Made by a program: the position numbers and the translations under genes. Source: Pelomyxa schiedti (lineage: Eukaryota; Protista; Evosea). From it: 33,941 nt of DNA. Every line of letters begins with the position of its first letter. The first letter of the stretch is position 1. The notes under the pieces are model-generated. The model saw nothing but the letters and a program-made list of their open reading frames with translations. It was not told the origin of the DNA and did no database searches. The stretch covers positions 1-33,941 of the forward strand of contig JAHLWZ010000471.1 in NCBI GenBank assembly GCA_020536535.1. Reading direction: 5' to 3'. This document shows, piece by piece, positions 2,251-6,289 of the stretch.

Positions 2251-3331
2251 ATGGCACTGGGATATCGCGCAGGTGGCCTCGCCCTTACTATTTTCTGTGT
2301 TCTACTGCTCCGTTGGATGTGGTCACCAGTCTCAATAGGGGACCCTTCCGATTCGGCTTGTCCCATAATCCCGCGGCCCGCTGCTCCATCCCCCTCGTTT
2401 GGCATCCAGGCCAGTATCCCGTGGGACCTCTGGCGCCGCTCAATGTACAAGTCCCACGGGAGCAGCGGTCCAGAGGGGCTGACCGTGACCCACCGGTGTC
2501 CCGCCGCATCAAAGTGGGATTCTGTTGTGAGCTACCAAGGTCGCGATGTCCTCTTCAGTGACACGACCTCTCGTTCCATGTTGAGCTCGCACACTCTCTA
2601 CAATGGCTACTTCGACGTTTTGGACTGCCACGGCAACAAGCTTTACACAGTGGTTCCCAAAAGTACAATGTATGTGAATATCTTGTAGATTTCACACCGC
2701 AGCCCATTAGTTGTAAATACTTATTATAAATATTATATTTATTGATAACGATACAGCAACTTAGTTGGTTATTGTTACTGATATTTCCTCCCCAGCTCTG
2801 TTGTTAGAACTATATCGGGAATGTTGCAGTCTACCACTGTTGCAACCATCCATGAACCTCTGAATGACGCTGTTGTTGGGTCAGTAGTTGGTACGCTGCA
2901 TGGATTCCTGAACATATCATTCATTGATGCTCAGAATAACACCGTTGCTCAGTCATATTACAAAAGAGTGTGTTGTACCCTGTCACTGTTTGAATTCAAT
3001 ACTTAAGCACAAGCAGGATGGACTGAGAGTTCACTATGAAATTGAGGTGGTTGATCCAGAATCACCACTCTCTGACCCCGCTTTCCTGAGCCTCTATACT
3101 GCCGTTACCAGATGGGATATAGAAAAGAAGGATGGTTGCAATTCCCTCGTGTGGTGGGTGTATTGGCCATTTGTTGGGACCCTGGCGTTGCTTGCTCTTG
3201 CAGGAATTTCAATGTGCTTGACTGGACCAACAAAGTCAAAAGAAGGTGAGGATAAGAAAGAGGGGCAACAATCTCCAGTGCCTGAACCAACACCACAAAC
3301 CACAGACACGAAGCTGGAAAAAACAGAATAG
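2251..3331 (+). CDS. Membrane protein with N-terminal signal/anchor and C-terminal TM; central beta-rich region, possibly LURP-one/scramblase-like
   Basis: Exons 2251-2669, 2796-2967 and 3017-3331 join in frame across GT-AG introns. Hydrophobic LALTIFCVLLLRWMW and LVWWVYWPFVGTLALLALAGISMCL segments; charged tail. The fold guess is weak. Confidence 0.65.
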
Positions 3332-3573
3332 AACTCTGTTTCTCCCACAGTCTTTTTGATCATCAATTTCTGTGACTTTGGGCGAAAATGGTGTCCCTCT
3401 GGTCGGTGTGACTGGCCTGTGGTTTATGATGCAACAAGTGTTCCTCCACCCTCAGTCTCAGAGTCTCTGAAGGCTGCACCTCAGAGATCGGAAAAAGACA
3501 ATCAACTGTCTTTTAAATGATCTGAGGCAAAACAACCATTCGTTCGCTCAACGATCAATCAAGAAAACAGTAC

Positions 3574-5334
3574 ATGCAACCGGAATTGCGACCCACGTCG
3601 TATGCACTACGGTGCCTGAGGTGCGGCAAAGTACGTTGCCGACACAGATATTGCTTGTTGTTGTAGTGCATCACCGTTGTAAGGGGGTTTCTTGAAGGTG
3701 GTGGGTGTATTTACAACACGATATCGTAGGAGTACCGCGACAATGAAAAGTGGAGGCTCAGTTGCGACAACTGCGCCACGCACGGTCCCGCCCTGCTTCG
3801 TGCGGAATACGACCAAAGATCCTTCGTTGTGGATCGCAGTATCCCTGGTTAGTGCTTTCTTTCTTGGGCCCAAGGGATACAAACCCTTTTGGGCGTCCAA
3901 TGCATTGTTGACACAAACTGACAACTTTTGCCAGGCGTGTTGCGCATGCACGAATGGTTGCCAATAAATCGCTGTATTCCAGGACTGGCGTCATCGTCCA
4001 CACTCACTCCTGCGGTGTGGCGCAGCCCCGAACTGGCGTTAGCACTGGGAATGACTGCACCCTCTGGAAAACCTGCTTCTGATGACAGCTGGTGTCGTTT
4101 GTGGGTTGCATTCTCTGGTCATCATCCAAGGCGCGGCGCAGAGATGCACTCATGCACGTTCAAGGAGCTGGAAGCTGTTTGCGCTTGTTCAAGGCTGGTA
4201 GGAGAAATGATTGATAAAACCCTTGTTGTTGCCTCTGCTGGAAATACTGCCAGGGCTTTTGCTCAGGTTAACTTTGGCCTTTCATTGTCAAAGAGTTGAT
4301 TGCACCCCAAGGTTTATTCCAACACTGGATCGTCTCTTGTCATTGTAGTTCCTCAAGCAGCTGCGGGGAATCTTTGGTCACTTCAACCATTTTCCCCCAA
4401 AGTTAGACTTGTGAGTGTAACTGGAGAGGGTGCTGACTATGCTGATGCAATCAAGTATATCCTTCAAGTAACAAATCATCAAATAAAACTCTACTAGACT
4501 GGCAGGACTGCTAGCAGCAAGGCCAGGGTTTTATTCTGAGGGTGGTGCCGGAAATGTAGCACGTAGGGATGGAATGGGGAGTGTGGTGCTCTGCGCAGCT
4601 GAAGCGATGGGAGAAATCCCACAGTTTGTTTGAATTGTCAGAACTATCATAGGAACTCATTACTTATACTAGGCACTACTTCCAAGCCATTGGTTCGGGG
4701 ACAGGAGCAATAGCAGCCCACGAAATGGCAATCCGTTTAAGGGCGGATCCACGGTTTTCTGCAGCCCCTACTATGCGATTACACGTGTCACAGAACATAC
4801 CATATACACCAATGTCTGATGCTTGGCTAAATGGGAGGCAAAATCACATTAAAAGCATTCCAGAAGCTGAAGCAAAAGCCAGAATATCTCAGGTGTCCGC
4901 ATTTGTCCTCACAAATCGAACTCCACCGTGTGTCTAATCCCCAGTAATTGATAATACTGAAAAAATGTGACAGGTACTCCATCTGTGGCGGAGTGTATGA
5001 CTGCATGGTAGCCAGTGATGGGCAGGCCTATTGCGTTACAAATGAAGAAGCATACGCCGCGGCACATATATTTCAGTCAATAGAGGGAGTTGATGTGGAC
5101 CCGGCTGCAGCCGTTGCACTCGGCTCTCTGCGGCAAGCCATTTCCCGGGGGACCATCACTGCCAGTGACAGTGTGCTTGTCAACATCACAGGAGGCGGCC
5201 AGTCCCTCCTCAAAAAGGAGCACTCGTCGGAACTCGTATACCTCAAGCCATGGGCCACAGTCGACTGCAACGCCATCAACGACCACACTGTGGACTCCCT
5301 CGTTTCCCAAATTACTTTCGAGCACTCTTCATAG
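3574..5334 (+). CDS. Cysteate synthase (PLP-dependent, threonine-synthase-like fold type II)
   Basis: 7 exons: 3574-3630, 3730-3847, 3935-4266, 4312-4454, 4498-4623, 4673-4927, 4974-5334. The spliced protein has YALRCLRCGK..LLRAEY..WLP, FSGHHPRRGA, CTFKELEA (PLP lysine), VASAGNTARAFA, EGGAGNVARRDGMG, HYFQAIGSGTGAIAA, VLTNRTPPYS and NITGGG, collinear with archaeal/bacterial cysteate synthases. Confidence 0.93.
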
Positions 5335-5498
5335 ACCGACGCAAGTTATTTGGCAGGAAAATCTTCAGAAGAGCTAAAAAATCCCCCTCCTAAAATTAGT
5401 TGTATCCATTCTCACAATTACCGTTTTTTTCCCGTTACAAGAATGCAAAAAAACGACAAACCGCTTGGGAAAGCGAAACGAAAATAAGAAACCAACGA

Positions 5499-6289
5499 AT
5501 GGCAACCGAAGGTACACCAGCAGAGCCGTCGGAGCCGTGTCCACTAAAGTGCGGGACAACGGAGCTGTTCGCGCCGTGCACGCCTCCCGGAGGCGGGTGC
5601 TGCGCGCTGACGATCTCGGCAGACAAGGGCGTGTGGACCCACGAGCAGGCGATGAACCTGACGTGGTACCACAACTCAACTTACTGCACCGCCGATACGT
5701 TCCGCCTGGCCGCGTCGTCGTGGGAGGCCGCGTGCGGGGTGAAGTTCATCCAGGTGTTCGACCCCAGCAAGGCCGTCTTCCAAGTTGTGGACGCGGGGGA
5801 GAATGAAGAGCAGGACAAGCGCCTGGCCAACGTAATCGCGTTCGCGTTCTTCCCGAAGGATCTGCCGCCCCACCGCGTAGTGTGCATGGCTTTGATGACA
5901 CAGTCGCCTAAGATGGCCGTAGCGGTGCTGAGGCACGAACTGGGCCACGTGCTGGGATGGAGGCACGAGCACATGTGGGAAAACTCTGAAGAACTCGCAG
6001 CAAAACTGTGAGTGTGTTTGGGTGTTTGATGTGTGTCAATCAGTAATTTCTGTTCACTCTTAGATTACCAACATAATAAACTGATTCTAAAGTAAAATCC
6101 CAACATAGGAAGTTCTCAGATGGAAGCCGTGAGCTACCTGACGCGAATTGCTACCAGCTGACAGAGTACGATAGGGTGTCGATCATGAACTATCTGAAGC
6201 TATGGCAAGACAGTGCAGCTGGAAGAGTCACGGACCTCAGCGCGAACGACATCCTGGGCAGTAGAATCGTTTACCCAAAAAAATCATAG
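5499..6289 (+). CDS. Metzincin zinc metalloprotease (matrixin/M10-M57-like), copy A
   Basis: Exons 5499-6007 and 6109-6289. Zinc motif HELGHVLGWRHEH (HExxHxxGxxH), AFAFFP strand, and Met-turn LTEYDRVSIMNY in exon 2. Confidence 0.9.

Follow-up and report, generated by a model that had tools for sequence, protein, structure and literature searches.

A host-encoded and spliced gene for a predicted cysteate synthase of bacterial type in the amoeba Pelomyxa schiedti

Cysteate synthase takes part in coenzyme M (CoM) synthesis in methanogens and in sulfonolipid synthesis in bacteria. Here we describe a gene for a predicted cysteate synthase in the anaerobic amoeba Pelomyxa schiedti. The gene is located at positions 3574-5334 of the plus strand of contig JAHLWZ010000471.1 (NCBI GenBank assembly GCA_020536535.1), which was analyzed over its full length of 33,941 nucleotides and is referred to below as the window. 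It is encoded by the host, and it is transcribed and spliced by P. schiedti. We consider it very probable that the product would be a functional, cytosolic cysteate synthase obtained from bacteria by lateral transfer, its reaction being predicted from family membership and its location from the N terminus of the protein. The structure of the gene, its transcription and splicing, its family membership, its catalytic motifs and its affinity to bacterial proteins were all read directly from the data presented here.

The exons were searched singly, and whole-protein searches were performed with a database record of the same protein (P0001). Against NCBIfam, exons 3 to 7 each matched the cysteate synthase model TIGR03844 best, with profile positions running colinearly from 44 to 389 and a summed score of about 315 bits; such colinear exon matches cannot be due to chance. 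Pfam, also searched exon by exon, returned the general PALP fold only (PF00291). When exon 7 was used as a query against 1.84 billion representative proteins, we retrieved P0001, a protein of 463 amino acids that is 100% identical over exon 7, that agrees with our spliced model residue for residue and that is labelled "cysteate synthase [Pelomyxa schiedti]" at NCBI. P0001 reached 425.3 bits on TIGR03844 (EC 2.5.1.76), in an alignment starting from residue 10, compared to a curated equivalog cut-off of 324.9 bits. On the best threonine synthase model (NF006050) it reached 42.6 bits, whereas the cut-offs of the ThrC models (TIGR00260 and others) range from 167 to 421 bits. In addition, residues 4-440 aligned with residues 3-412 of PDB 9k3c_A, entitled "Cysteate synthase" (E 3.7e-95). 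By the curated hidden Markov model (HMM) and by its likeness to a solved structure, the predicted protein is a cysteate synthase. A preliminary description of the window, made from the letters alone, had called the gene a complete cysteate synthase and had proposed a comparison of cysteate and threonine synthase HMMs; both the assignment and its separation from threonine synthases were borne out.

The motifs HSCTFKELEA (with the lysine K135), ASAGNTARAFA, ARRDGMG, GSGTGAIAA, QNIPYTPM and NRTPPYSICGG align with those of bacterial and methanogen cysteate synthases. The same set, in its general forms FKELEA, ARRDGMG, GSGTG, QN.P..PM and NR.PPY..GG, differs from the ThrC outgroup. Threonine synthase belongs to the same fold-type II superfamily (PF00291) of pyridoxal phosphate (PLP) enzymes and likewise eliminates phosphate from a phosphorylated amino acid, but it carries FKDRG where the Pelomyxa protein carries FKELEA, and the score of the latter (at most 43 bits) falls below every ThrC cut-off. 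Since cysteate synthase has its origin in threonine synthase (Graham et al., 2009, as cited in PMC4153887), since its activity is here predicted from sequence and since the host assembly (a fragmented and incomplete single-cell draft of 5,337 contigs, to which all absences reported for the host apply) yielded no source of sulfite, the protein might have drifted to other beta-replacement or beta-elimination chemistry, such as that of threonine synthase or phosphoserine sulfhydrylase. Such a drift seems very unlikely to us, given the gap between 425 bits on the equivalog model and 43 bits for threonine synthase, the retention of every motif specific to cysteate synthase and the presence of a separate thrC-like gene in the host, a multi-exon gene at C505:119781-120807.

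The gene consists of seven exons separated by six GT..AG introns, as read from window positions 3300-5600 with the borders checked by script; when joined, the exons form an uninterrupted frame of 463 codons followed by a stop codon. Introns of 99, 87, 45, 43, 49 and 46 nucleotides had been given in the preliminary description, and these sizes proved to be exact. Transcription was followed in assembled RNA contigs from three single-cell transcriptome runs of the same study (X1, X2 and X3), which are informative on presence and splicing and not on expression level. Introns 3 to 6 were skipped in these contigs at exactly the predicted borders, and a DNA run covering the same stretch was unspliced. 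The gene is present as a single copy in the 52-Mb host assembly. Its spliceosomal introns and its spliced RNA show that it is host-encoded, in agreement with the earlier claim that it is not symbiont contamination; a misassembly of contaminant or symbiont DNA was rejected on account of the six introns and the spliced RNA. The possibility of a Pelomyxa-like host had been raised, and the organism is indeed Pelomyxa.

All parts of the gene lie on the plus strand. Exon 1 (3574-3630) comprises 19 codons from the ATG start and holds the first CxxC of an N-terminal four-Cys motif. It is followed by intron 1 (3631-3729; 99 nucleotides, GTACGT..TCGTAG), which was placed by the unbroken homology over its junction, by exon 2 (3730-3847), which is covered by the whole-protein alignments to TIGR03844 and 9k3c, and by intron 2 (3848-3934; 87 nucleotides, GTTAGT..TGCCAG), placed by homology only. 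The PLP lysine K135, within HSCTFKELEA, is encoded by exon 3 (3935-4266) together with LVVASAGNTARAFA; this exon gave 67.7 bits on TIGR03844 over profile positions 44-134. Intron 3 (4267-4311; 45 nucleotides, GT..AG) is absent from RNA contigs of runs X1 and X3, and exon 4 (4312-4454) covers profile positions 136-177. Both intron 4 (4455-4497; 43 nucleotides, GT..AG) and intron 5 (4624-4672; 49 nucleotides, GT..AG) are absent from RNA contigs of all three runs, X1, X2 and X3; the exon between them, exon 5 (4498-4623), contains EGGAGNVARRDGMG and matches profile positions 180-219. Exon 6 (4673-4927) contains FQAIGSGTGAIAA and QNIPYTPM and gave 86.9 bits over positions 221-303. Intron 6 (4928-4973; 46 nucleotides, GTGTGT..TGACAG), a phase 2 intron, is absent from an RNA contig of run X2. 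Exon 7 (4974-5334) encodes the C-terminal domain, a tail of about 30 residues and the stop codon, and gave 91.4 bits over positions 305-389. Just downstream of the gene, an open reading frame at window positions 5400-6011 of the plus strand carries a HELGHxxGxxHE zinc-peptidase motif and matches Peptidase_M57 weakly (19.3 bits, compared to a cut-off of 21 bits).

The best matches of the protein were bacterial proteins, unnamed or from metagenome-assembled genomes (MAGs), with 49-51% identity; those with a name came from candidate division WOR-3, Pirellulaceae, Spirochaetes, Bacteroidales and Moorena. The methanogen enzyme (Methanosarcina acetivorans MA3297 type, TIGR03844) is alike in its inferred reaction, and the Pelomyxa protein passes the equivalog cut-off of that model. 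However, the cysteate synthases of Methanomicrobiales score 550-690 bits on this methanogen-built model, are only 40-44% identical to the Pelomyxa protein and form a separate clade. A scan of genome contigs with exon 7 returned a single Methanospirillum locus. Trees were computed under a mixture model with a careful search. In these trees, the bacterial and eukaryote-like sequences formed a clade (support 95/98) that leaves out both the Methanomicrobiales (97/98) and the Thermoplasmatota fusion forms, and the eukaryote-like rows joined a WOR-3-like bacterial clade at 85/92. Among the residues common to the bacterial-type proteins, C-T-FKELEA is the better marker; NTARAFA is found in place of the NTGRAFA/C of methanogens. 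Of three motifs (at residues 155, 239 and 266) that had been taken in the preliminary description as more bacterial than methanogenic, only NTARAFA distinguishes the two types, RRDGMG and GSGTG being shared by them; the conclusion drawn from the motifs was nevertheless right. The case for a bacterial affinity is built on identity, on the free tree and on the shared residues, rather than on a rejection test, and these support a bacterial-type gene of putatively foreign origin.

Only one other named eukaryotic homologue was found, the EukProt protein m51a1_g5981 ("putative cysteate synthase"), which is 46% identical over its full length and has the same motifs; the m51a1 prefix is the gene tag of Mastigamoeba balamuthi (PMC8136499). 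It belongs to the same bacterial-type clade as the Pelomyxa protein but falls, together with metagenomic sequences, in a sister subclade. The metagenomic proteins that cluster with Mastigamoeba have 460-534 amino acids (P0003, P0007, P0011 and others), and the grouping of Mastigamoeba with the P0003-like sequences received a support of 99-100/95-96. On the Pelomyxa side, a Logan contig of 1.4 kb (L007; GC 53%, run ERR11594402) encodes the C-terminal 164 residues of a protein 54% identical to that of Pelomyxa. It is interrupted at 135-182 by a 48-nucleotide GT..AG intron located at the same codon and in the same phase as Pelomyxa intron 6, which indicates that a second intron-bearing organism carries an orthologue. 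For the trees, both exon pieces of L007 were combined in one row, with an X at the split codon, and Pelomyxa and L007 grouped with a support of 99/96-97. The Pelomyxa gene is not isolated, given the M. balamuthi orthologue and the labels present at NCBI and EukProt. Because six introns were gained, because M. balamuthi has an orthologue and because one intron position is common to Pelomyxa and L007, the transfer would be old.

One P0003-like sequence was followed to its genomic surroundings. On an ENA metagenome contig of 9.35 kb (L051), an intronless gene for a cysteate synthase of 476 amino acids adjoins a gene for a zf-UBP/UCH deubiquitinase. The Atlas clusters nearest to this deubiquitinase are 100% eukaryotic, and a homologue search with the UCH gene returned metagenomic proteins only. 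The contig has 68% GC, the called genes contain no introns and all seven of them end in TGA. It is probably eukaryotic, and probably from an unsequenced, intron-poor relative of Mastigamoeba; its GC content and its exclusive use of TGA stops, despite the eukaryotic Atlas neighbours, are the reason why we call this assignment no more than probable.

We also analyzed the gene context of cysteate synthase in the nearest bacterial relatives. An alpha-oxoamine synthase (AOS) gene lies directly downstream of the cysteate synthase gene in three of the four close bacterial contigs that were fetched, and two of these contigs (L041 and L042) show the gene order GNAT, cysteate synthase, AOS. The AOS of L041 matched PDB 28eh ("Cysteate-C-fatty acyltransferase") with 423 bits, SulA (7u7h) with 394 bits and serine palmitoyltransferase (SPT) with 270 bits. 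As the scores for 28eh and SulA are far above that for SPT, it would be a cysteate fatty acyltransferase (CFAT) in the sense of PMC13692747. A bacterial MAG (GCA_964419905.1) contains, at L053:6222-12251, a fusion of 671 amino acids between a reductase of 3'-phosphoadenosine-5'-phosphosulfate (PAPS) and cysteate synthase, an AOS, two AMP-binding (acyl-AMP ligase) pieces, an acyl carrier protein and a short-chain reductase. From its predicted products, this set looks like a complete sulfonolipid cluster that would cover the route from sulfite to capnine. A similar fusion of PAPS reductase and cysteate synthase, of 670 amino acids, is represented by the P0010 cluster, whose 62 members are named from Thermoplasmatota/Euryarchaeota MAGs. 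The pathway of sulfonolipid synthesis has been described previously (PMC11211663; PMC2444003). The pairing of cysteate synthase with CFAT suggests that the likely donor clade employs the enzyme in sulfonolipid synthesis. The cysteate synthases of bacterial sulfonolipid producers (Cys/CapA, of capnine and sulfobacin synthesis; PDB 9k3c and 9k3o) belong to the same family as the Pelomyxa protein and share its PLP lysine and substrate motifs. Unlike them, the Pelomyxa gene is eukaryotic and has six introns, its product carries about 20 inserted residues near positions 93-112 as well as the C-terminal tail, and the host assembly yielded neither a CFAT partner nor clustered genes of the pathway.

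Several results count against the reading of a functional cysteate synthase acquired from bacteria. The sole RNA contig over the 5' part of the gene (3568-4033, run X1) keeps introns 1 and 2, and retention of intron 1 leads to a stop codon at 3664-3666. Since the alignments to TIGR03844 and PDB 9k3c are continuous over both junctions, this contig probably represents pre-mRNA or DNA carry-over, and regulated retention is conceivable along with these two; RNA-seq, which had been proposed as a check on splicing, therefore bears out introns 3 to 6 and leaves introns 1 and 2 retained in the only contig covering them. In the phylogeny, the union of both eukaryotic subclades was the maximum likelihood topology in two data sets, with weak support (65/89 and 49/31), and so the subclades may go back to two separate transfers. 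When Pelomyxa and L007 were forced beside the Methanomicrobiales, the approximately unbiased (AU) test gave a difference in log-likelihood of 10.8 and a p value of 0.23, and did not reject this position. As for partners in the host assembly, the sole match to PF01507 (PAPS_reduct) is an FAD synthase and no match to NIR_SIR was found, and a CFAT-type acyltransferase was also absent, the L041 CFAT query giving only matches of 26-36% identity. M. balamuthi has been reported, in work cited in PMC8136499, to lack sulfolipid labelling from labelled sulfate, which argues against a sulfonolipid derived from sulfate and is silent on one derived from sulfite. Finally, the conversion of O-phospho-L-serine and sulfite into L-cysteate and phosphate is inferred for this protein from family membership.

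The result of the AU test, together with the fact that P. schiedti cells are packed with prokaryotes, could be taken to favor misassembled symbiont or contaminant DNA, or else a recent transfer from the methanogen endosymbiont. We regard both as extremely unlikely: four of the six spliceosomal introns are removed in RNA, the locus lies on a eukaryote-like contig of 33.9 kb, the identity to the cysteate synthases of Methanomicrobiales is 40-44% compared to 49-51% to bacterial ones, the free tree keeps the Methanomicrobiales out at 95/98, and M. balamuthi has an orthologue. Lateral acquisition from bacteria, as put forward in the preliminary description, is thus favored by the identities and by the clade, while the AU test lets a methanogen sister stand.

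For a functional cysteate synthase of bacterial origin in P. schiedti, the following mechanism may be proposed. The enzyme would be a fold-type II PLP enzyme of the threonine synthase lineage, and the donor would have been close to the clade of WOR-3-like and other MAGs in which cysteate synthase is paired with CFAT for capnine-type sulfonolipids. By analogy with characterised members, O-phospho-L-serine would be bound as a PLP aldimine at lysine 135; elimination of phosphate would give an aminoacrylate, to which sulfite would be added to yield L-cysteate. Compared to its bacterial homologues, the protein is not extended at the N terminus, for which reason a cytosolic location is the simplest assumption. 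A supply of phosphoserine is plausible, and the host assembly contains a multi-exon phosphoserine aminotransferase gene at C448:59213-60560. PAPS is made in the mitochondrion-related organelle of the host and exported from it (PMC8887013). A link from PAPS to sulfite within the host was considered as a candidate and rejected, since the only gene with a PAPS_reduct domain is the FAD synthase and the search for a sulfite reductase domain gave no match in the host assembly.

Regarding the fate of cysteate, we rank first its use as head group of a sulfonated lipid of the host, a proposal that we make tentatively and with low confidence. The acyltransferase search that had been suggested for this route yielded no canonical CFAT/CapB-type gene in the draft host assembly. 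A CFAT transferred along with the cysteate synthase gene was thus not found in this assembly; the host matches correspond to SPT1-like genes, to SPT-like fragments and to BioF/KBL/SPT-like domains fused to polyketide synthases (PKS). Two genes resembling SPT subunit 1 (LCB1) lie at G000:C253:65455-67681 and G000:C171:104208-105957, and an SPT-like fragment lies at C800:37801-38268. The PKS are encoded by two frames, one of 2723 amino acids on the minus strand at G000:C171:53358-61526 (L058:859-9027) and one of 2468 amino acids on the plus strand at G000:C291:145181-152584 (L059:682-8085). Both are highly reducing type I PKS with the domains AT-DH-MT-ER-KR-ACP and a C-terminal AOS that is BioF/KBL/SPT-like and not CFAT-like; their KS part is presumably encoded in an upstream exon. 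A PKS-fused AOS domain matched SulA with 117 bits, and CFAT was not among its matches at E <= 1e-30. In a fusion of this type, the chain would be set free by its condensation with an amino acid, and the product would be a sphingoid-like amino-ketone.

Taurine synthesis and sulfite scavenging come after the lipid in our ranking, each with low confidence, and other uses take the remainder. A GADL1/CSAD-like enzyme of the host could remove the carboxyl group of cysteate, yielding taurine or a related sulfonate osmolyte. The host assembly has a group II PLP decarboxylase gene at about 19.6-20.7 kb of G000:C936 (19654-20467, plus strand, corresponding to L061/L062), whose C-terminal piece is closest, among solved structures, to GADL1, cysteine sulfinic acid decarboxylase (CSAD) and GAD. 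From these similarities, the gene is a candidate cysteate or aspartate/glutamate decarboxylase that could turn cysteate into taurine. The match is at family level only, with E 1e-15 on a piece of 171 amino acids, and a glutamate or an aspartate decarboxylase is equally possible; we therefore look on the taurine route as doubtful. A second decarboxylase gene, similar to aromatic-amino-acid decarboxylases, is located at C423:40138-41485.

Alternatively, the main role of the enzyme could be to scavenge sulfite: as an anaerobe of sulfidic sediment, the host would fix toxic sulfite onto phosphoserine and store or excrete the inert cysteate. In agreement with this, neither a sulfite-making host pathway nor a dedicated consumer of cysteate was identified in the host assembly; with no such pathway found, sulfite would need to come from outside or from prey. 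On the other hand, the enzyme has a biosynthetic use in its nearest bacterial relatives, where it is encoded in operons, and a role in detoxification is not known for any characterised cysteate synthase. A primary role in scavenging seems rather unlikely to us.

It had also been suggested that the host enzyme supplies cysteate as a CoM precursor to methanogenic endosymbionts, here Candidatus Methanoregula pelomyxae. P. schiedti depends on its Methanoregula symbiont (PMC10579272), a cysteate route to CoM exists in Methanomicrobiales (PMC4153887), and 117 of the 201 Methanomicrobiales genomes examined carry a cysteate synthase above the family cut-off. At E <= 1e-60, a match is present in 119 of the 201, a count that is not evidence of absence in the others because many of them are incomplete MAGs; one genome (G190) has two copies. 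The suggestion is weakened, however, by the symbiont itself, which expresses its own cysteate synthase METHP_00191 (expression value ~163) next to comDE METHP_00192 (~109) (PMC10579272, supplement file 6). Moreover, M. balamuthi, which is not known as a methanogen host, has an orthologue, and the host gene is of bacterial type. The ComDE genes proposed earlier as a target were searched for through ComD (TIGR03845), which had no match in the host assembly, ComE alone not having been searched. In view of the symbiont's own cysteate synthase and ComDE, the Mastigamoeba orthologue and the bacterial type of the gene, a supply of CoM precursor by the host is most improbable.

With the predicted cysteate synthase of P. 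schiedti, a known enzyme family gains a new member among eukaryotes, one already labelled by the automatic pipelines at NCBI and EukProt; in the library searched, we found no paper pairing cysteate with Pelomyxa, Mastigamoeba, Archamoebae or Entamoeba. The finding adds one further bacterial gene to the long list of those that have shaped the Archamoebae, and the attractive idea of a host feeding CoM precursor to its methanogen is probably wrong. The gene points to an unstudied sulfonate metabolism in free-living anaerobic amoebae. As a speculation to which we assign a small probability, free-living Archamoebae, and probably further anaerobic eukaryotes known from metagenomes, would own a cysteate-based sulfonate metabolism, leading either to a capnine-like lipid, with SPT or PKS/AOS fusions replacing CFAT, or to taurine-type sulfonates. 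If true, such a cysteate-based metabolism would constitute a eukaryotic pathway that had so far gone unnoticed, and it would provide Archamoebae with a new sulfur sink.

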